Positions 32,710 to 57,900 of a DNA stretch of 64,000 nucleotides are shown here, piece by piece. The notes below the pieces were generated by a model. The model was not told the DNA's origin and searched no databases. It saw nothing but the letters and a program-made list of their open reading frames with translations. The stretch's first letter is position 1; every line of letters starts with the position of its first letter. The position numbers and the translations under genes were made by a program. The DNA lies in assembly GCF_003704095.1 (NCBI RefSeq), contig NW_020847572.1:1-64000 (forward strand). Reading direction: 5' to 3'. Origin of the DNA: Pocillopora damicornis. Taxonomy: Eukaryota.

Positions 32710-34233
32710 TCAGCTTGTTGGTCTTCGTACTGTCCGCATCGGTTTCTGCGCGCTTAGCATAAATTGAAAGAAAACTAAATCCCTGTACGAGTCGGGAAAG
32801 ATAACAGGCGCTATCAATGTCCAGATATAGATGAACGTGCTGAAAATAGCAGCAGAGAGTCGAATCCATACCGCTCCCCATCCGCAGACTAACTTGACAC
32901 TAAAATGTTGAGCCTCTTCTGGCCGGTACCAGCTAGTTAATGTCATCATGGAATAGAGAGCGGCTAAACAAAAAAGCACTTGGAAAAATGAGTAACTGTA
33001 GGCCACGCCGTCACGCTCATCATCAAATACGCAACCCCCTTCCTCGAAAACGTCGACACGCACTCTAGTGTCCTCTCTATCGGGTACCTCGTGAGTTTCG
33101 TGTGTTTGCTTGCGTGTAACGTGTCCTTGTTGTAGTTTGCCGTACTGCGGAGCGCGAACATCGCGTAAACAGGCGTAGATTAACACAAAGAACATGAATC
33201 CTAAACTTAACAATATTTGAATGTTACTAAATGGAGTTCCAGGGAAGAGATAGTCACGTGATGGGTTACAAACTTCATCAGGTTCATTTGACAATGCTAA
33301 CCACGTGATGAAGGTATTGTAAGAGGTGGCGACCGCTGCTTGAAGGAGTCCCGAACGCGGGCGCGCATCTTGAACGACAGGATTAACAGAAATGTAAGTG
33401 GCAGCAACACAGAGATAAACATTAAACGTTATAAAAAACATGTTATTATGACAGCCAGGCGCCCATGCGTAGAGAATATAGAAGGAGATGATTGAAATAA
33501 TGGAGATTGCGTAAAGTGTTATGGTTGGTATCCACAGAACCATATACCATAAGTTCAGCTGTGTGTAAGATGTAGAGGCTTCGAGTCTCTCTACACAGCT
33601 GGCATTCCACGAGTGTACAAAGTCAATTAACAGCACAAATTGCAAAATTATAAAAGCAAAGCCTCCGTTTAAGCCAAAGAATGTCCATACTTCGCCAGTG
33701 TATTCCGAATGCGGTATAAGCAGAAATAAAAACGTTAGTAACGATAAAACTAAAATCTTGACTCCCCAAAAGCCATTGTTGATCCGTGCTCGGCTGTCAC
33801 GACTCGATAACACGCCATATGAAGCCAAGCTCTGGACAAAATAAAAGATGGCTAACATGAAAAGAACTCTGTACACGGACGCGTAACTAAGTAATGTGTC
33901 ACAGAAAAAGTAGGAGACAGTTTGGCAAAATTCATCGCCAAGAATGTGTCTTGTTCGCGGTGTTAGCAAAAAACAACAGAGCAAGGAAGCCCCTAACAGA
34001 AGTCCAATGTAAGACATTCGGGTGAAGATTGATCGGCGAAGGCGAACTCGAGGGCGAAAACAACGTGCACAGAAATGTAAACCACAGCACAGAACCACAT
34101 CGAGTTTATAACAGACTTCAAGTAACGCATCTACTACTCCGCGAAATCTTGGATTTTCACGAGTGTTTGTTTCGCTGGTTCTCGGGGTTTCCACAATAAC
34201 TTCATGAGTCGATGAAGTTGACGCAGTCGCCAT
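32710..34233 (-). CDS. SERINC: Serine incorporator (SERINC/TDE) family multi-pass membrane protein, single exon, 507 aa from the first ATG
   Basis: Family motifs RARINNGFWGVK, ILQFVLLIDFVHSWN, PRSGLLQAAV, LALSNEPD, DDERDGVAYSYSFF, LYSMMTLTSWYRP, FIYIWTLIAP; many hydrophobic segments. The ORF track starts at GTG 34248; the first ATG is at 34233. Confidence 0.93.
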   Translation of the reverse strand: MATASTSSTHEVIVETPRTSETNTRENPRFRGVVDALLEVCYKLDVVLCCGLHFCARCFRPRVRLRRSIFTRMSYIGLLLGASLLCCFLLTPRTRHILGDEFCQTVSYFFCDTLLSYASVYRVLFMLAIFYFVQSLASYGVLSSRDSRARINNGFWGVKILVLSLLTFLFLLIPHSEYTGEVWTFFGLNGGFAFIILQFVLLIDFVHSWNASCVERLEASTSYTQLNLWYMVLWIPTITLYAISIISIISFYILYAWAPGCHNNMFFITFNVYLCVAATYISVNPVVQDARPRSGLLQAAVATSYNTFITWLALSNEPDEVCNPSRDYLFPGTPFSNIQILLSLGFMFFVLIYACLRDVRAPQYGKLQQGHVTRKQTHETHEVPDREDTRVRVDVFEEGGCVFDDERDGVAYSYSFFQVLFCLAALYSMMTLTSWYRPEEAQHFSVKLVCGWGAVWIRLSAAIFSTFIYIWTLIAPVIFPDSYRDLVFFQFMLSAQKPMRTVRRPTS

Positions 34234-35947
34234 TAAATTGCCCTCCACCTTTCAGCGGTTTTTTCAACGCGTCGAATGAAAACCAATTCTTTCCTCAATT
34301 TCGTGGTTGAGAGCTTGAAGTGGAAAAAGCAATGTTGTTAGTCTTTTTTAACACGTGTCAGTGATTTAGGGAAACCTTAAATCTTTAATGTCGCATGTTC
34401 CCTTGTAGTCATTGTTTGAGATTCTTTGTTCTATCTGCGGTATCAGAAAATTACAAATATTACCCCGAGAAATTAAATTATCGCAAAAGGTCTGAAAGAA
34501 TTGAATTTAAAGGCGATAACGAAAAGGAAAGAATTGATACATTTGATGCCTACATGGCATGGTCGACATGACTTGAATTGGCTCCTTACTGATTCGTACT
34601 AAATAGCATTATCGAAACAAGATTTGATTCGCTCCATCTTGTAATCAATGTTGCTTTTTCTTCCGATGAATGGTTTTTCAAAACAATACGTCAACGGCTT
34701 AATGATTTTTCTTTGAATACTTTATGACCGAGAAATATTCTGTGCCGTCTGGAAGAATTTTAATTTATGAGATGAGCTGGCTGTTTTTTTCTGTTTGTGC
34801 GTGAGTACCTGTAATTTGTATTCTCTGCCCACAAGGATGCAAAATAGTTACTTCGCCAAAATGACTTCTACTCGCTAAAAGAAAAGACCAATTTAACCCG
34901 AGCCTGGATAAAAATAATTGTCAAATATTTTTGAAGTTAAACGGACAAGAGAGGTTTTTAATGCGTCAGTTACATTTTCGACTTATAGCTAGCTAATGCC
35001 TAGTTTTAATAATCTCCAATAAATACATAGAGCCCGAATAAAATGTCTTCCTTTTCCGAAGACACACCTATTGGACAAACAAAATTTTTCTCCAAGCGAT
35101 GTGATATTCATTCTATACGCAAACTTTGGAGAAAAAATTAAAAACATGTCATATAGTAAAGTTTGACAGAAGGAATTGCATGAATGTGTTTTTACTCCCA
35201 AAAAGCCGAATTTTCTTTAAGTTTAGTCATTGCTTCTGTGCTAGTTTTACATTCATGCAGCTTACAAGACTCAAATGTTTTATAGAACTTTCATTGGTTT
35301 CTTGGATTTGACCCTTGGTCTTACATAACAATTACGTCCTTACGGTGAACGACCGCTAGGACGAGCGTTTGAACGCGACGCTTTCTTCACTACATTTCTT
35401 TATACCCATTTAACTCCGATGATCTGATTGTTAACTCTCCCCTCTAGCTGCTACACAATTCCTTGTAAATTAGTTACAAGAAAATTGGAGTTAGATCAAG
35501 ATAACAACTTCTGCCAAGTTTGAGTATTCTTATTACCCTTTTGCTGGGTAGTGAATGGATATTATAGGGATAAGTTACATTCACTTTTGGGATAGAAAAA
35601 TAAAATATCAAAACGCCGCGAATTAAAAGGGAAAAGTCCATTCGAATTCNNNNNNNNNNNNNNNNNNNNNNNNNNNNNNNNNNNNNNNNNNNNNNNNNNN
35701 NNNNNNNNNNNNNNNNNNNNNNNNNNNNNNNNNNNNNNNNNNNNNNNNNTCAGTGGAAAAAAAAACCTTAAAATGGGGCATAGAAAAGAAGTTTCCCGAC
35801 GCGACAGCTGCAACCGCTGTTTGTCACAAGCCCTCTTCCGCTTCTTTCGAAAAGGCTTCAAGAAGACTGAGCACCACATACACTCGCAGTGCCTGCTGGG
35901 TTTTGAAACTCAGACTGACGTGGCGAGCGCCAGGCATACAAAGAAAG

Positions 35948-47200: not shown

Positions 47201-50200
47201 AATCCACTATCAGTGGTGATTCACCAGAGGATGAAAGAGAACCATCGCGTCATTCTTATGCCAGATCACGACAGCCACCTTCACAGTATATGGACACACT
47301 TGATCCAAATGTTGCCAGTCATTCTTTAGGTCACGGTAAGAGATCTGCCAGAGCTGGAAAATCAAAGACGAGATATACTGAAGATGATCGTGCAATTTTA
47401 TCTCAGCGGTCAAGGCTAGAGACATCTGAAAATAGAAAAGACGATTCAAGGATACCAGATGCCAAGGGTGGCCATTCTTCGCGTGATAAAAGCTTTTCTC
47501 GTGATCCAAAAACCTCCAGAATGGATGCTAACATTTCAAGGCTGACTTCGTTGGTAACAAAGTCATTAGAGGAGAGCATTTCCTCCTCCTCTCTTGCGTC
47601 AACCACAACGTCTTCAAGAAGACCAAGTTCAAAAAGTAAAAAGGCAAAGTTGGCTTCCTCAACTAGTGAATCGTCTGACGTTTCTGAATATTTCAACTAC
47701 GCTTTCTTCGAGCCTCGTCTCCGGACGTCCATTGGACAGAAAATAAAATTAAGAGAGCTGCTGAGGTCTGTGAAGTCACATGACCTTTCCCCTATAGTCC
47801 GTAGAACTCGAGATAGCACTTCTCCTGAGTCTACCTCAGGATTGTCCAGCAACGACGGGGTAAGTGCTGAAAAGGAGCCTGAGCCTGTAGTGAGGGAGCC
47901 TTTACGATCAGATGCTGCACAAAAGCCTGCTGCGATGTACTCCCCACAGCAGCCAACGAATGGTCCAAGATGTACTTGCGCTCGCGCGCCAAAGACTGTT
48001 ACACGAGCAACATCATCAGGGGCGTTCCGAAGCCGTAGAGAAGGTGATGGAAGAAGGATTGAAAAGCGCGATGTTGGTGTGAACTGTCCCACACCAGTTA
48101 TGACAAGGGACCCATCGCCCGTTGAAGACGAGGTGTCGCGCGTTCTGTTGGAAGATGCTAGTACTCAGACGGACGAAGTTGGTGGTGGACGAAGAGTGGA
48201 AAGAAAAGTTGATTGTGAACCTGAAAAATCACCGCGTAAGTCAGTGAAGAGTAAAAGATACGAACAGCTTTCAAATGTTGAAGAACGTGGTGTTATCTCT
48301 CAACCTTCGCCTAAAAAGTTAGATCTCTATTACCAGATGGAGCAGCGAGAAGCTCGACATAAACCTAAAGAACGTTTAGTACCGAGTCAAAATTCACCGG
48401 ATCATCGTGTTAGAACAAGCCCTGACTGGAGAAACAGGGCACAGGAGCCTGCGTGGTTTTATCCTCTGAAGGGCAAACCGCAACCCGAACAAAAAGCCAC
48501 CTCACAGATAAGCAGTAGCCTGAATAAAAGTCGCACAAGAGACGAACTACGAGCAGACATGTTTGAGGCTTCAGTTAATCCTTCCAGCACACTACAGCAG
48601 CTCAGTCTTCAAGAAGCATTCCTCTATGCCAGGCCTAAATTTGTAAAGCGTTCGCAGGACAGAGTTTCTCAAATTGAGCAAGCTGCACGAGAGAAAGAAA
48701 GACGTAGGATGTTTACTCAGACTGTGGATGAAGAAAAGAAAAGAGAAGAGGCTGAGTTACGAAGAGCAAGAAGTCCGCCTGTTCCTCAGAAAGCTAAGCC
48801 TCGTGTCTCGAGAAATGGTTAGTTCACGTCAGGAGTCCTGGGTAGGGTTGTGTGAATCCCTCTAGGAGCAATTTTCGATTGAGTGTCGAAAGTTATTGGA
48901 GACTCTTAGTTTTTATAAGTTTGCTCTTCGATTGGTCTGGAAAACTCGCGCCATTTTCGCAGCTAATGACATGCAAAACTAAACTAAATCGTGACTTGGT
49001 CTCTCGATTTTTCTTTATTCCCGTACTTCGGCCATTGTTATTGTTTACACTGTGATATTTAATTTGCTCCTTGTGATGTTTTCCTTGGTTTCCTTGGCTG
49101 TTGTGATTACTTCGGTTTTGTTTCTACTACACGCAATCGAAATTCGCTCCAACCCAGGAATTGCGGTCGTTTTGCTAACGAGCAGTTTGCTGGCGTTTCT
49201 TAGGTCGTTTCGCTAACGTTGTAAGTTGTTTTGCTAATGTCTCTTTTAGTTTTGTTTTCTTTGAAGCAGTGACAAATGTATCGAATCGACTCTCGTAATG
49301 TTTCGAGTCGACTTCATTTCGTCTTGAATTGACTTTTATCGGCGGCTTTCAGTTTGTATTGAAACGACCTAACTCCCCTTCGATTAGCAGTTGATCAAGT
49401 TCTGCCGAAGGAGTCACGAAACGTTTCGTAAATACCCCCTTTTTCTTATAAGAACGTCTTATTTTGGGGCTGAGGCTGAATGTTCTTTTTTTTTGGCTAT
49501 TTGAGCCTAAAAGTGTCCTTGACATATTAAAGTTTTGAGATATAGTATTTCAATAATTCGATTCGGACGTAACCAGACTAAGTTCGATTACAAACTGAGT
49601 TGTTTTTCAGTGTATCGTGCAATAAGAAAACTGCATCTTTAAAGTTAAAAAAGGCCCCTAAGTATTTATGTTAGTTCTCCTGTGAGACTACAGTTTTACA
49701 TTTCTTTTTCCTCTGTTTAGAATTTTCACTTACTCTCAGCCTGGATATGTTCTTAGTACGTTCTTAAGATTTTGGTCAATCTCAGGTTGAACGTTCTTAT
49801 AAAAAAAAAGCTTCTTATATAGGTTCCTATAAGAAAATAAGAGTGTACGTCAGAGAAACGACGTATGAGGCGTTGCAAACTGCCCCGAGATATTGAAAAA
49901 ACGACCTAAAACGTTAGTAAACTGGTCGTTAGCGAAACAACTCGTAGGCGAAAAGACAGCTTATCAAACCTGTAATACCGGTTATTTTAAGAAAGAGCAC
50001 GCAAGAAGTTTTTTTCCTTTTTTGAGTATTAACTGTTTTTGTTTTCTACTTTAGACCAATTTTCTGGACCAAAACCACGGCAGATGACCCGGGCTGAGAT
50101 GAAAGAATTAAATAAGAGGTAAAGCCAGCTACTTTTTTCTCCAATACCTAACGGTCCTACAGCTGTTTACTTTATGAGTCATATATAAACTTGATATTGG

Positions 50201-50609: not shown

Positions 50610-51637
50610 NNNNNNNNNNNNNNNNNNNNNNNNNNNNNNNNNNNNNNNNNNNNNNNNNNNNNNNNNNNNNNNNNNNNNNNNNNNNNNNNNNNNNNNNNNN
50701 NNNNNNNNNGATAACATTCAAATTGTGTAGTTGGAGAAACATTATTAAAAGTTCTTTCCAAGCTACTGTCAATCATGTGGCAGACCTCTTGGGAAACATT
50801 CAAGCGAGTTCAAAATTGAATNNNNNNNNNNNNNNNNNNNNGTGGAGGATTCCAATCCTTTTTGTTTGTGTCTGCCTTTGATGCTTGCTATGGCAATGAT
50901 TGACAGAAGCACAAAACTGAATCTTCAGTTTAGTTCTTAGCCTCAAAGTTTGCATGTTACTTAAAGGGATTGTAATTGGAAACTGTTGAAATCAAAATTA
51001 GTTGCAGATGGTGCAACCAAGTGTAACAAACTTAACTTGTCTAGATTNNNNNNNNNNNNNNNNNNNNNNNNNNNNNNNNNNNNNNNNNNNNNNNNNNNNN
51101 NNNNNNNNNNNNNNNNNNNNNNNNNNNNNNNNNNNNNNNNNNNNNNNNNNNNNNNNNNNNNNNNNNNNNNNNNNNNNAGAAAATGGACTTATCAGTTTCA
51201 TGAAAAAGACTCAAAACATTTCACAAAAAAAGGAGTTCTGACTTCTGTGACTACCAGTCAAAAAATAGTAATCCTTTTCAGTGTTATACTTNNNNNNNNN
51301 NNNNNNNNNGCTGATAGTCCCACTGAAGTTCATCCATGTTAGTTTGGGAGTTATTTTCAAAGAAAGTTAATTTGAATTTATCCATCTAGGTCCAGTAAAT
51401 TGCTTCCTTCAATAAGTAATTTCTCGCATATAAACAGTGTATTTATATANNNNNNNNNNNNNNNNNNNNNNNNNNNNNNNNNNNNNNNNNNNNNNNNNNN
51501 NNNNNNNNNNNNNNNNNNNNNNNNNNNNNNNNNNNNNNNNNNNNNNNNNNNNNNNNNNNNNNNNNNNNNNNNNNNNNNNNNNNNNNNNNNNNNNNNNNNN
51601 NNNNNNNNNGAAGGTACATGAATATGCACATGTTTTA

Positions 51638-54148
51638 CTACCAACTGGAATGAATAATCCCCTTTAACATTTTGATAAAGGGTTTTCTCAAATGTTCCAC
51701 ATCCTCCCTTGTTCCTTCCAGTGCATCATCTAGATCTTGCATCAGATCTTCATCCATTGGATGGAATTCCAGTCCACCATAAAATACCTTCTCATGCTGT
51801 TCTGAGTCATAATTCTTTTCAAGCAAGTTTAGGTTTGGCATTAAGAAAGATGGCAGATTTCCTTGCTCAAGACAATCATCAAGGAAGTCATAGATAGCCT
51901 TCCCCCAGGCAATCACCTGGTCTTCTGATGTATTCTGTATATCAAGGTCAATTTCTTTCTGGCAAGATTTATTTACTAACAGATAAAGTGCATTTTTCAA
52001 AAAGTAACTAGAGATAACTTTATCTGCCCAGACATTGTTATCTTCTGGCAGATTTACTGCTACCTCAGTTTCTTTGTGCGATGATTGTTCAGTATCACTT
52101 TCATTATTTCTTTCTTCATCAGAACTGCTTGGTAGTTCTTGCATGATTTGAATTCCTGGTGCAATTTTTGAACACACATAAGTGCTTCTCACAGCCTTTG
52201 CTAGAATGTAACTGGAACGTACATGCTCTGGAAGAGCCTGGAATATTGCAGTTTCTGCTGTAGAAAAAGAGAGACGAAAGTGCTTTTCTCCATGTTTGAA
52301 AAAACATTCACCATGTAGGGCCATCACAACGTGAACACCTTTTTCTTTCAATTTGGGATGCAACAAAGGGGTTTCACAAATATTTGGAGGCCAAAACAAG
52401 GGGAAGTGTACTGCAGGGACAAGATCAACACTGATCAGCAGATCTCTGTAAACTTGACCTGACCACTTGAGAGTAATTTTTGTAGCATTTGCACCCATTA
52501 CGCAGACACTAACTGGTGCTAGAGAGGGGAGATCATTCCAGATTTCCTCCTCAAAAAAGGCTTGGTTTAACTGACCACTGAAGTCATTGATCAACTTTGC
52601 ACTCCTTAAACTGTTGTTTTCATCCACATATTGCATAATCTCATGAGAAGCTGACAGGCGCAAATCAGGTTTCAGTTGCAGTTGACAAAACATTGGGGGA
52701 CTGGATTCCATGTTTGGCTCCTGGAAATGCTTCCCAAGTTTCACCATTGTACATAAGAAGTCAAATTCATCAGGAAATCCACACTTGGTGCCTTCACTGA
52801 CACTACCAGAGATCTCAGGGACAAACGTAAACAGGGGATAAGCTTTTGAAACAATTCCTGCCACCCGCTGAATAACTTTGTTCACTGCAAATTTAATTTC
52901 TTGGCTCTCTGGAATTACTTGTAGTCTGCCAATGACTGGTGAAGTCAATAGTTTTTTCAGAGTTCTGTTTGGGTGTCCATTTAGAGAGAAGTCCTTTGAC
53001 TGCATCTTTTCGACATCCTCTTGCTTTTTGATGTCATTGAATTCATCTTTGAGTGGAAAAAAATCAGGTAGTTCTCCGCGTTGAAAACCATTGTCCAAAC
53101 ACAAAAAATAATCTTCCAAAATATCGATTAGTTGTACATATCCAAAGTACCTTGCCCAGTGGATTGGGGTTTTCCCAGAATTATCTGGCTTTGACACTAA
53201 ACAAGATTCACACCGATTCAATAAACATTTCAGTGCAATGGCATTGTTGTAGAAAACTGCGTAGTGAAGAACTGTTGCTCCATTCTTGTCCTCGATATCA
53301 ACCACACAGCCATTCCCGATTAGCTCCCTTAAATTTGCTGTATTGTCCCAGGAGCACGCCAAGTGTAATGGGGTAACACCATTTCTGTCTTTGATGCCTA
53401 AGTCAGCCCCATGCCTGACAAGGAACTGCAAGAGAGAGCTCTGTCGCATTTCGGATATCACATAATGTACGAGAGCTCGACCAAAGATGTCTTGACTGTT
53501 GATTTTATGACCTTCCATCACAAAGAGTTTCACTAATTTTGAATGCCGCGATTTCTCCTCATCATATTTATCTGTTGGGTTGCTGCAGTCTAGATATCTC
53601 AACATATGCAAAGGTGTCATTCCTAAAGAGTTACTGCTGTTCACCGATATTCCTGTTGAGATCAGAAACTGCACGGTCTCTAAAGAAGCCCCTGTTTCGA
53701 CCGCCTTATGCAGGAGGGTTTCACCCGTTGAGGATAGTGTAGCAGATAAATCGACTCCAAGATCTACAAGGACTTGAAGAACCTCAACAGCATCTGATTC
53801 AAACAGCTCCAAACTATGAAGCAGTTCGTAGGTTCCATTTCGCATACGATCGGGCTTTTGCAGGGAAAATCCCCTGTCTACGAAAGTTTGGCATGCTTTT
53901 TTATTAGCATGCTCTAAAGCATGTTGAAATGGCAGTCTTCCTAGGCCGTCTCTACTGAACATATCCGCGCCATAGTTTAGGAGAAGCTGTACCATTCTGT
54001 AGGCCTCGTCGTCGTAAAAATTAATGCAGTGCAGAGGTGCGCTGCCATAATCATCTCTCTTGTTAGGATCTTCTCCCGCTTTTAAACAGTTTTCCACGGC
54101 TCCAAGACCAGTGTTGAGTATAACTTCACTGTGTAGTGGGAATTCCAT
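51638..54148 (-). CDS. Ankyrin-repeat + cGAS-like (Mab-21 fold) nucleotidyltransferase (ANK-cGLR), single exon, 836 aa
   Basis: Nine ankyrin cores (GSAPLH, GRLPFQ, GTYELLH, GETLLH, GMTPLH, GRALVH, GVTPLH, GATVLH, GKTPIH), then the NTase signature SGSVSEGTKCGFPDEFDF, a third acid in ISVDLVPA, and Mab-21 motifs FRLSFSTAE, SSYFLKNAL and CLEQGNLPSFLMPNLNLL. ATG 54148 lies in AACATCATGG context (the ORF track starts at TTG 54181). Confidence 0.92.
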   Translation of the reverse strand: MEFPLHSEVILNTGLGAVENCLKAGEDPNKRDDYGSAPLHCINFYDDEAYRMVQLLLNYGADMFSRDGLGRLPFQHALEHANKKACQTFVDRGFSLQKPDRMRNGTYELLHSLELFESDAVEVLQVLVDLGVDLSATLSSTGETLLHKAVETGASLETVQFLISTGISVNSSNSLGMTPLHMLRYLDCSNPTDKYDEEKSRHSKLVKLFVMEGHKINSQDIFGRALVHYVISEMRQSSLLQFLVRHGADLGIKDRNGVTPLHLACSWDNTANLRELIGNGCVVDIEDKNGATVLHYAVFYNNAIALKCLLNRCESCLVSKPDNSGKTPIHWARYFGYVQLIDILEDYFLCLDNGFQRGELPDFFPLKDEFNDIKKQEDVEKMQSKDFSLNGHPNRTLKKLLTSPVIGRLQVIPESQEIKFAVNKVIQRVAGIVSKAYPLFTFVPEISGSVSEGTKCGFPDEFDFLCTMVKLGKHFQEPNMESSPPMFCQLQLKPDLRLSASHEIMQYVDENNSLRSAKLINDFSGQLNQAFFEEEIWNDLPSLAPVSVCVMGANATKITLKWSGQVYRDLLISVDLVPAVHFPLFWPPNICETPLLHPKLKEKGVHVVMALHGECFFKHGEKHFRLSFSTAETAIFQALPEHVRSSYILAKAVRSTYVCSKIAPGIQIMQELPSSSDEERNNESDTEQSSHKETEVAVNLPEDNNVWADKVISSYFLKNALYLLVNKSCQKEIDLDIQNTSEDQVIAWGKAIYDFLDDCLEQGNLPSFLMPNLNLLEKNYDSEQHEKVFYGGLEFHPMDEDLMQDLDDALEGTREDVEHLRKPFIKMLKGIIHSSW

Positions 54149-54903
54149 GATGTTCTTTTGCTTCAAATCGATCCACCTCAAGCGTCTTATAAGCGGAATA
54201 AGGCTTTCTTAGTATTACAAGGTTCTTCGATTCTTTGTTTGCGCCAAGGTAAACAGATTCCCTCGGTAACAAGGGGAGGGGTGCACCATTAGTAAAGTGA
54301 TAGGGGCAGGGGATGGTGGGGAATTTGGCTGATGGAAGAATTTCTTATTTCTCAAATATGTTTTGCTTGTTCTATTTTTTAGGTGGATATCTGAAAATAC
54401 GGGTTATTTTACCCATTTACTCGATGTCGTTTTTTCTCTTGCGTTCTACTACGTACTTTTTTACGGGGATCTTTTTCTGTTTTTGCCTCAACCCCCCCTT
54501 GTTAGGGGTTGGCATTAGTGGCATTTGCACTGATGAATTTCCCTAGAGGGTGGGGAAATTATACGTTTGATTCCTTTGCCTTGCTTTGAGGTTGCGCAGT
54601 TTGTGCAGTTCTTCCTCTTTTGTCCAAAGGGATTGAGGATAATTATGTTTTTGCCCTTCGAGCTCTAATCAGGAATTTGCCACGAAAACGTTTGACGGAC
54701 CTGCGGGACTCCTGCTGTTTAGAATTAGTTTCTGAACACCTTTACGGCTTAGCTCCAGTCAACGAGTCTTCAAGCTGTAAATCATTGATAACAATACACT
54801 GATTTTATTTGTACAAAAATGAACAAAGAATTTTGCTATGCGAAATATTATTTACAAAGTGTTTGTCACGAACAAGTCGCTGTGTATATGCACACGAAGT
54901 ATC

Positions 54904-57900
54904 TCAAGTCTGATCAACATCGAGAGTAAGATCCACAACATTCATTGTTGTTTTGGTGGAGTTGCAGCCTCGCAAGCCAGCTACGAACGTGGACGGCTTC
55001 GGAACATTTGTTGATGACTCTCGCTTGGTTTGTGTTTCCACATTCCTGTAAAAAACAATATAAAGGTAGTCTCAGTACCTCTGAGAAGCGACACGAAATA
55101 AGGACAGAATCGCGCGCGCCTCGCGCAAGTTTCATAGCGCGCGCCCAATTAAAATTCGATAAGCTTGTAACAGCATGAGCGCGCGCGCCTCGTGCAGGTT
55201 TCACCGACATGCCATTCGCGTACTCTGTTTAAATGCGATAAACTTCCTTTTTTTAATCTAACATACAAACTTGCCTTCAGTTGTTCAAAAACAAGTTTTC
55301 ACCAAAGCGCAATGATTCAATTCTCACGCGAATGTTCACCTTCCCTTTATATCAGTTTGGTTTTTTTTCCACGCGCAGAAACCTCTGACGTCAGCAAATG
55401 TTATTATGACGCCAATAATTGTCGCGGTTAACGCAAAAGAACCAACGCCTTAAGTTTTGGTCGGTAAAACATTCTTGGTGTCTTCTTTTTCTCCATCTTC
55501 TTCGAAAAATCTGAGAACCATTCTTTCCTAATCTCCCAGGTAAGTGAATAAGTTGCAAACATCATTTCAAAGATCGTCAAAATTTCAACTTGTGGCGATA
55601 AAAATTACGAAAAGGCTCGTGAAAAGTTGTTCAAATTATAACAATACTTACTTAGGGAGGTACACTTGTGAGTCGTTGTCTCTCCTAAAGTTACTCAGAT
55701 TCGTCTGCACTGAATGAGTGATCTTGGTGCGGAGATTTGCCTGTTGAAACAAATAGAGAGTTGTACTTTCTCTTACTTCAACGGAAGAGACAAGCTAAAG
55801 AAACGAAACGTGTCAAGTACATTTAGAAATCTTTCCCCAAAGCCACAATTAGACTAATTTTCCTCGAAAAGTTGTGTCTTGACAAGTTTCCTAGCCATGA
55901 CTTGTCAATAAAAAAAAATTGTCATCCAAATTTAGATAACTTGACAAGAAGCTTTCCAATTCTACACCTATAATACGCCAACGCTGCAAGATTAATAGAT
56001 ATTGCACAGGAAAACTTGACGATACAATGCGTCTTTCTTCCAACCCACCAGTTTAAGAGCTTTCCTCCTCAGCTCCCATTCATTCCACTCGTAAGACTTG
56101 ACAATATTTGTCTCCATGAAGTGAGTGTCTGTTTGTGTTCCACTGTCACACTTAGTAACAGGTGCCTCGATCATCCGTCCAGGTTCTTTACCCTGATGCA
56201 CAAGATCAAAGTTAAAATTCTTTTTGACTTTCGTATTCGTAGGTACCTTCTGCAGAACTTCAAGGGAACTTGTTTCTAAGTTATAGTATGATTAGACGGG
56301 GGGGAGGGATCCAGGAATTCTTGATAGGGGGAGAAGGGGAGTCCAATTATGAAAACTATTGACGGAAAAGTAACTACTTAATACTTCATATTGTTTAGTA
56401 AGTATAGGTAACAACATGATTTCGAGTGCAATTTGGCGTCAATTAGCTCTAGTAAATTTTTGAAAGACGACAGAATTACATAAACCCGTAAATGTCTGTT
56501 AATAGACACAAAGTAATCAATAGTTTACCTGGGCGTAAGGTGTGATGGAGGCAAACTGTGTGTGAAGCTCCAGCAGCTGAATAAGTTCGGGAGATTTCTT
56601 AGCCGCTTCTGCAACTCCATTAATGTAACTTCAACAAAACAGAGAAAGAGGGTGTTAATAACACAAGTCACATTCACTCAACAACGTTCATTTACCGAAT
56701 ACATTCGGCATTCTCCACACCAATTGCCGAGCGAGGTGAAGCAAAATCAAGGCAACGGATAATTACTAACGAGACATAGTTTAAAATTGCTCTCTAGTAG
56801 AAACAAAAATGCAAAGAAAACAGCGCGAAAGAAGAGGCCTATATACCTTTCAGGAGCATTGGAGAACTCGTAGGCAGCTTGTTTGTCACAGAAGGCGTAG
56901 TAATTGTCTTTATAACGTAGAACACCGATCCCTGGGTTGGACGGGATTAATAAACGATCATATACCACAAGCGACCAACCACAAAAACCCTGAAAGAGAG
57001 AAATATCAAAATGAAAAAATGCGCATCAAATTGCGTTAAACCGAAATAAAAGTAAAAACTTTGAAATAATCATTTGCCAGGCTAGACAAGCTACAAAGAC
57101 CAATAAACCAAAGAGAAACAAATACAGTTGAGATTTAAACGGATAGTAAAAGACAAAACTAGACAAAATTTTGGCTAAATTTTTAAAGATGAACAAACTG
57201 CATGCGACACGGCTCTAAAAGATTACATGACCTTACATCGACATCGCTAGCCAAGACCATTTATCAGCACTTATTGCCAATGATATGACGAAAGTTTCTT
57301 AACTTGTTTGATTAAGCTTGCAAATTTACATTTCCATAGACCACGTTCATAGTCTGTCGCGGGAGTGAATAGAAATCGGCCGAAGAAAAAAAACTAAGTA
57401 ATGCGTAACTGTTGAAGCGATCTACGCGCAGTGCTTTTTTTAAGTCGCGCAGTACTGACTAAATTTTTCGCTGATTTCCATCGACTAATGCGATGGACTA
57501 CACTGGCCGGGGAGGGGAGTGTAATATTGTTACATACTGACCCGGTACTGTATTGGTAGCTTGTCAAAGTTCTTTGTAGTCTCGTGAAACAGTAGTTCAA
57601 TCTTAGGATTATCGATTTCTTTGCCATCAATTCTATCATCGTCTGAAGAACTCTGATAGAAACAAATCACCATTATTAACCTGAGAATAATGAAATATTC
57701 TAGACCACTGAAAGCCAGGGTAATTTAGAGCGGGGATGGCACAGTAGTGAGAGCTCTAGCCTCCCACCACTGCGGCCTGGGTTCGATTCCCAGACCTGAA
57801 GTTACATTTGAGTTTTTTATGGTTCTCGACCTTGCTCTGAGGGTTTTTCTCCAGGTCCTACGGTTTTCCACCCTTTGCAAATACCAACATTCCCTATTCC

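Follow-up and report, generated by a model that had tools for sequence, protein, structure and literature searches.

The cGAS-like receptors (cGLRs) of animals have been catalogued by Li et al. 2023 (10.1101/2023.02.22.529553; Cell 186:3261), who collected 3,020 of them, listed ankyrin- and TPR-fused architectures, annotated ankyrin-fused members in Stylophora pistillata, and counted 42 cGLRs and 5 STINGs in the stony coral Pocillopora damicornis; the known ligands are double-stranded RNA (dsRNA) and double-stranded DNA (dsDNA) only. We examined one such gene, ANK-cGLR, in the first 64,000 nucleotides of P. damicornis contig NW_020847572.1 (assembly GCF_003704095.1; the window), where a first-pass annotation made from the letters alone had reported an 836-residue open reading frame (ORF) joining ankyrin repeats to an intact cGLR, with the implication that the combination was new. 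We found the ORF at 51638-54148, on the minus strand, but the protein itself, as well as its architecture, has already been published: it is XP_027058778.1 (LOC113685464), entry 85 of Table S3 of Li et al., the compared text from residue 402 being letter-for-letter identical. The Mab-21 coordinates, 452-790 by CDD in the published domain table and 452-637 plus 705-786 by Pfam in ours, agree and thus support the identity. Gene, architecture and family assignment are therefore already in the literature and are not a new finding.

With vertebrate cGAS (mouse 4o6a and 4k96, human 6ct9), ANK-cGLR shares the bilobal nucleotidyltransferase (NTase) fold, the GS motif, the E-x-D pair, the third Asp, RLSFS and SYxxK, but the two are only 17-19% identical, the Zn thumb is missing, the domain is acidic rather than basic, an acidic insert of 42 residues and an acidic, conserved tail are present, and a 353-residue ankyrin array replaces the basic disordered N-terminus. 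Cv-cGLR1, Sp-cGLR1 and Drosophila cGLR1 are of the same family and all lack the vertebrate thumb; however, they are single-domain, basic (isoelectric point, pI, >8.5) sensors of dsDNA or dsRNA, whereas ANK-cGLR is acidic and ankyrin-fused. Pd-cGLR (cGLR-01, XP_027049992.1) comes from the same genome and has the same low pI of 5.0, but it is a single-domain, auto-active enzyme that produces 2'3'-cGAMP after purification from E. coli, in contrast to the ankyrin-fused ANK-cGLR, which carries no mark of activity in the published screen. A repeat array and a Mab-21 NTase within one long ORF recur in this genome, in four paralogues of ANK-cGLR and in the TPR-cGLRs, and also in the ANK-cGLRs of bivalves, although the enzyme domains of the paralogues are 22-30% identical to that of ANK-cGLR and fall in separate clades, and the TPR-cGLRs bear their repeats C-terminal to the enzyme.

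We know of no cGLR for which a non-nucleic-acid ligand has been proven, and nothing relevant came from searching the literature for more recent studies of ANK-cGLRs or of such ligands. The most obvious cGLRs in which to expect one are those fused to repeats. ANK-cGLR is a good test case, being intronless, expressed and conserved in stony corals, with an ankyrin-less form already made. Between XP_027058778.1 and ANK-cGLR there is no sequence difference, and the published test covered the ankyrin-less domain with nucleic-acid ligands only. Corals have about 40-50 cGLRs and several STINGs, and the cue of one orphan branch would help to explain this expansion in hosts of intracellular algae and dense microbial communities. 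What the present analysis adds is modest: purifying selection on the array instead of an arms race, an acidic charge kept in every orthologue, a conserved acidic tail, a syntenic locus, and five ANK-cGLR paralogues in the genome.

Enzyme domain and ankyrin array

The enzyme domain is that of a cGLR-family protein, with the bilobal cGAS/Mab-21 NTase fold and a complete active site, as the first-pass annotation had proposed. The motifs on which that proposal rested are in place and in cGAS order: GSVSEGTKCGFPDEFD at 448-463, ISVDLVPA at 572-579, RLSFS at 625 and SSYFLK at 713. In an alignment of 23 sequences (ANK-cGLR and 22 full-length or near full-length relatives, two mollusc proteins included), G448, E461, D463, D575, R625, S627, E632 and K651 are invariant and Y715 and K718 nearly so; the triad, Y715 and K718 are likewise invariant or nearly invariant in larger sets of 52 and 91 relatives, as are G448 and S449 in all three sets, and RLSFS..E and SSYxLK are kept. 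The invariance of G448, E461, D463 and D575 in all 22 aligned relatives takes this observation far beyond chance. The Zn thumb of vertebrates, said to be absent, is indeed not found: the pattern H-x5-CC-x6-C has no match in the 836-residue protein, which contains not one CC dipeptide.

Searches for the domains and the fold gave the same picture. Pfam Mab-21 matches residues 452-637 above its cut-off (6e-12, 46.5 bits; cut-off 24.1), and Mab-21_C matches residues 705-786 at 20.2 bits, slightly under a cut-off of 24.1. A single-sequence phmmer search of the enzyme domain against the PDB returned no match; a profile built from the clade matched mouse cGAS at 1.4e-27, Cv-cGLR1 of oyster (8gjw) at 5e-26 and Mab21L1 (5eog) at 1.9e-07, and it aligned the GS...EFD and ISVD motifs with the catalytic motifs of cGAS. 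Folded alone from a 91-row alignment, the domain was modelled with a mean predicted local distance difference test (pLDDT) of 86.5 and a predicted template modelling score (pTM) of 0.85, and VIA-align superposed this model, an NTase fold, on DNA-bound mouse cGAS (4o6a_A) with a Z of 30.8 and a root-mean-square deviation of 2.6 A over 326 residues, and on Cv-cGLR1 (8gjw) with a Z of 27.8, at 17-20% identity to solved cGAS and cGLR structures. The three acids are predicted to converge in space by equivalence to cGAS rather than from the coordinates of the model. ANK-cGLR is thus not a strict cGAS of the vertebrate dsDNA-sensing type, as it lacks the Zn thumb and has a pI of 5.02 instead of a basic one; nor is it a non-catalytic Mab-21 protein of the Mab21L1 type with a degenerate site, as its active site is complete and conserved. 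It has the fold and the complete active site of a cGLR, and a STING-type receptor is encoded in the same genome. The features on which the following argument draws are these (window coordinates):

51638 to 54148, minus strand: complete coding sequence of ANK-cGLR, 836 residues and stop (ORF; unjointed RNA contigs; equal to XP_027058778.1 / LOC113685464)
54149 to 54239, minus strand: 5' untranslated region up to the reach of the longest RNA contig (record 1 of run X1 ends at 54239), without an upstream ATG
53090 to 54148, minus strand: ankyrin array, residues 1-353, ten helix-hairpin repeats (Pfam, PDB sequence matches, AlphaFold model, Foldseek)
52952 to 53089, minus strand: linker, residues 354-399, predicted disordered (pLDDT <50 at 354-394)
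52163 to 52951, minus strand: NTase core lobe of the cGAS-like domain, residues 400-662 (Pfam Mab-21, clade profile, VIA-align)
52760 to 52807, minus strand: GS motif and first two catalytic acids, G448 S449 ... E461 F462 D463 (alignment with GS...EFD of mouse cGAS)
52412 to 52435, minus strand: third catalytic acid, D575, within ISVDLVPA (aligned to ISVD of cGAS)
52037 to 52162, minus strand: acidic disordered insert between the two lobes, residues 663-704 (pLDDT <50)
51815 to 52036, minus strand: C-terminal helical lobe, residues 705-778, with the SSYFLK nucleotide-stacking motif (Mab-21_C at 20.2 bits; cGAS superposition)
51641 to 51814, minus strand: acidic tail, residues 779-836, conserved; an acidic stretch modelled with low confidence comes first, and a confidently modelled helix ends the protein

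The N-terminal half is an ankyrin-repeat protein in the usual sense, a solenoid of tandem units of ~33 residues, each a helix-turn-helix and a hairpin. Five Ank families of Pfam exceed their cut-offs in residues 1-350, from 3.6e-36 (Ank_2) to 1.5e-16 (Ank_3), with Ank_4 at 1.5e-32, and phmmer matches the array to ankyrin-1/2 in the PDB at 4.9e-52. In Foldseek the full-length AlphaFold model (pLDDT 76, pTM 0.71) finds ankyrins and DARPins at ~1e-15, cGAS first appearing at rank 40. Nine repeats had been claimed for the array, a count that does not hold exactly: the model has ten helix-hairpin units in residues 1-353, of which repeats 4 and 6 are irregular, so that nine lies within counting error. 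The linker that follows is less conserved than both flanking domains, and its divergence is second only to that of the acidic insert (pI 4.05; 17-40% identity outside Pocilloporidae), which sits where the vertebrate enzyme has its Zn-thumb region. In the acidic tail, residues 779-815 have a pLDDT below 50 in the full-length model and the terminal helix one of 82-95 in the domain model; that the tail is a candidate regulatory element is speculation.

Ligand and mechanism

The enzyme domain (residues 400-836) has a net charge of about -22 at its pI of 5.02, and the pI stays between 4.7 and 5.5 in all 22 aligned relatives. In contrast, Li et al. 2023 reported a pI above 8.5 for the cGLRs that sense nucleic acids and considered that acidic cGLRs probably answer other ligands, proposing a positively charged, non-nucleic-acid ligand for those such as Pd-cGLR; the first-pass view that nucleic acid is an unlikely ligand is borne out by this comparison. 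Of the 140 cloned enzymes in their Table S3, entry 85 is a construct that starts at residue 402 and is thus ankyrin-less, and entries 84 (S. pistillata XP_022799095.1) and 86 (Acropora digitifera XP_015747416.1) are orthologues cloned in the same ankyrin-less form. The screen used poly I:C and a 45-bp dsDNA (ISD45) with all four nucleoside triphosphates, Mg2+ and Mn2+, and the authors attributed the apparent inactivity of many cGLRs to the probable want of the right ligand. The acidic enzyme domain, the missing Zn thumb and the lack of a mark with dsDNA and poly I:C together suggest that the cue for ANK-cGLR is probably not a double-stranded nucleic acid.

The array is held under the same constraint as the enzyme. 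Pairwise ratios of nonsynonymous to synonymous substitution rates (dN/dS) lie at 0.12-0.18 in the ankyrin array, at 0.11-0.15 in the NTase core and at 0.05-0.11 over the C-terminal 58 residues, a pattern of purifying selection on every domain across stony corals. Array and enzyme are conserved alike (55% vs 56% identity to Acropora), and in robust-clade corals no part of the protein is better conserved than the acidic tail, at 78-91% identity among their orthologues and 58-64% in more distant ones. So slow an evolution of the ankyrins is not what an arms race with pathogen proteins would be expected to leave, and a conserved partner is more likely than a fast-evolving pathogen protein because the array is as conserved as the enzyme. 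An exhaustive search yielded 433 clusters related to the enzyme domain, and ankyrin repeats are present in 46 of the 52 nearest; in the tree, most rows without ankyrins are short fragments, which nest next to fusions of full length.

We lean slightly towards the reading that ANK-cGLR is a ligand-gated cGLR acting through STING, with a cue that is probably neither dsDNA nor dsRNA and an ankyrin array that docks a conserved partner. Under this reading, the nucleotidyltransferase would be inactive at rest and gated by its ligand, and on activation it would make a second messenger of the cyclic-oligonucleotide type, to which at least one STING receptor of the genome would respond. The array would serve to dock a conserved host protein or an invariant microbial molecule, the docking being needed for activation or placement, and would be no simple lid that turns the enzyme on when taken away. 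That the clade has kept the fusion for so long argues for functional coupling of array and enzyme. That three ankyrin-less constructs were not marked active argues against a simple lid, with the limit that the marking is that of Table S3, in which a weak product may have gone unmarked and the folding state of the constructs is not given; judged by it, removal of the ankyrins (the construct from residue 402) does not obviously unleash the enzyme.

Some observations weigh against this reading. The Note column of Table S3, which marks 15 active enzymes, is blank for entries 84, 85 and 86, and the paper reports neither a product nor a ligand for XP_027058778.1; such a result fits a missing ligand and a non- or differently catalytic protein equally well, or else poor folding in E. 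coli. A scan of the 650 bases upstream found no consensus for a gamma-activated site (GAS), an interferon-stimulated response element (ISRE), NF-kB or TATA, a weak negative, so that the promoter gives no hint of immune induction. Of the mechanism that the first-pass annotation had envisaged, some parts are plausible; its guard-type sensor finds no support here, the selection pattern being the only evidence that bears on it, and neither does simple autoinhibition by the ankyrins. A more specific and tentative proposal, which we consider unlikely, is that the orthogroup senses a conserved non-nucleic-acid cue, likeliest a protein, through the ankyrin groove, with the acidic stretch 779-815 as a pseudo-ligand or switch; if true, this would be the first cGLR with a defined non-nucleic-acid trigger mediated by an accessory domain.

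Alternatively, the ligand could bind the back face of the enzyme, as in other cGLRs, with the array only placing the enzyme or recruiting downstream partners. Purifying selection on the array equal to that on the enzyme would be expected if the array bound a conserved host protein, and acidic cGLRs such as Pd-cGLR are active without an accessory domain; yet the array is kept in most of the nearest relatives, the exceptions in the tree being mostly fragments, and a fusion kept over very long times suggests tighter coupling than mere localisation, which leaves this arrangement improbable in our view. Somewhat more doubtful is autoinhibition, in which the array, perhaps together with the acidic tail, would hold the enzyme off in cis until a protein ligand in the groove released it. 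Ankyrin grooves commonly bind extended, disordered peptides, structures of the AnkB autoinhibition segment are among the PDB matches of the array, the low-confidence acidic stretch 779-815 is highly conserved, and the full-length pTM of 0.71, reached despite a disordered linker, may reflect a predicted contact between the domains; but this mechanism predicts constitutive activity without the array, whereas the three orthologous ankyrin-less constructs stand unmarked in the published table.

Those same three blanks would also be expected if ANK-cGLR were not a second-messenger synthase at all, but a Mab-21-like scaffold, or an NTase that makes linear oligonucleotides or modifies protein with a nucleotide; the Mab-21_C match below the Pfam cut-off and the 17-20% identity to solved cGAS and cGLR structures point the same way. 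The acidic triad is, however, missing from non-catalytic Mab-21 proteins, which have lost it, whereas ANK-cGLR keeps it invariant together with GS, RLSFS..E and SSYxLK, at a dN/dS of ~0.13, and the clade profile matches cGAS at 1e-27 but Mab21L1 only at 1.9e-07. A different NTase chemistry would be compatible with all of these observations. We regard this explanation, too, as quite unlikely. Finally, a sensor of nucleic acid like cGAS or Drosophila cGLR1 would agree with the nearest solved structures, which are of DNA-bound cGAS, and with the dsRNA and dsDNA that are the sole cGLR ligands so far; against it stand the pI of 5.0 and net charge of about -22, with a low pI throughout the 22 relatives, the absent Zn thumb, and an enzyme domain that is unmarked with poly I:C and ISD45 dsDNA, and we think it very improbable.

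Transcription and neighbouring genes

ANK-cGLR is a real, intronless, transcribed gene. Its ORF runs in a single exon from the ATG at 54148, the first ATG of a transcript contig whose 5' end lies at ~54239, to a stop at 51638-51640. The presence of a transcript, which the first-pass annotation had made a test of its proposal, is established by contigs that four separate studies yielded from RNA libraries made with polyA or oligo-dT selection; they span the gene (51610-54239) with no joint, and a single 3823-base contig extends beyond the stop into the 3' untranslated region. RNA depth is zero at intergenic 54368-54761 in all four runs. Also in 4/4 runs, the contigs of the gene upstream are separate from those of ANK-cGLR and have had four GT..AG introns removed (55045-55650, 55740-56047, 56192-56527 and 56629-56846). 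Because this intergenic stretch is silent and the neighbour is spliced in the same runs, the RNA cover of ANK-cGLR is transcript-like and not that of stray DNA; as the evidence consists of assembled contigs, it speaks to the presence of transcripts, levels and conditions of expression not being readable from it. The 27 listed differences between RNA contigs and the window comprise 15 synonymous and 12 nonsynonymous changes, none of which creates a stop or falls on a catalytic residue. At position 53793, in codon 119 of the ankyrin array, 2 bases are missing from one RNA contig of low depth (5.6, run X9); the loss would shift the frame and may reflect either a null allele or an error of assembly. 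A pseudogene or annotation artefact was considered and rejected on the grounds of expression, purifying selection and intact orthologues.

The upstream neighbour is a spliced gene on the minus strand (54791-56990 and beyond) that ends 550 bases upstream of ANK-cGLR. One of its introns contains a stretch, 56399-56439, at which numerous RNA contigs of all four runs break off with varied loose ends, and which looks like a short multi-copy element common to other transcripts. Convergent to ANK-cGLR on the plus strand is a single ORF of 1462 residues (44434-48822) with a C-terminal ALMS motif (27.9 bits; cut-off 27), and further along an intronless ORF of 512 residues on the minus strand (32713-34248) encodes a serine incorporator, SERINC (Pfam 3e-116, whole profile). 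With these three as its neighbours, an immune gene cluster was rejected.

Orthologues, paralogues and STING loci

Full-length orthologues with 50-83% identity occur in Stylophora, Orbicella, Desmophyllum, Acropora and many coral assemblies, and every one of the genomic copies examined is a single ORF. The orthogroup forms a fully supported clade (100) on a long stem, in a tree whose sample was picked by similarity to the ANK-cGLR query and which cannot date the fusion. A coral orthologue with 70% identity keeps the convergent ALMS-motif ORF, there of ~1470 residues (L022 17202-21653). Beside an Acropora-type orthologue lies an ORF of 1019 residues with endonuclease and reverse-transcriptase domains, resembling a long interspersed nuclear element (L021 1557-4616); a split DEAD/Helicase_C gene also adjoins this orthologue, and synteny with the window is lost on that side. 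Two database records of orthologues bear other names: the S. pistillata GenBank model PFX20234.1, of 684 residues and without ankyrin repeats 6-9, is labelled 'Potassium channel AKT3', and the Desmophyllum record 'E3 ubiquitin-protein ligase', both of which look like ankyrin-driven misannotation.

The P. damicornis genome (234,350,878 bases in 4393 contigs) contains at least 51 Mab-21 matches, and five ANK-Mab-21 fusions are present as single ORFs, the one at 51638-54148 included; cGLRs with C-terminal TPR repeats are found as well. Nine of the Mab-21 matches lie within ~70 kb (C2558:29065-97279), a tandem array of stand-alone cGLRs in frames of 336-380 residues. Six loci match STING_LBD (PF15009) at 129.7-143.3 bits (cut-off 27). 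On another contig, four matches to the STING ligand-binding domain stand in tandem within 12 kb (C2801:5333-17145), and two cGLR genes lie ~255 kb from them on the same contig (C2801:271296-275538).

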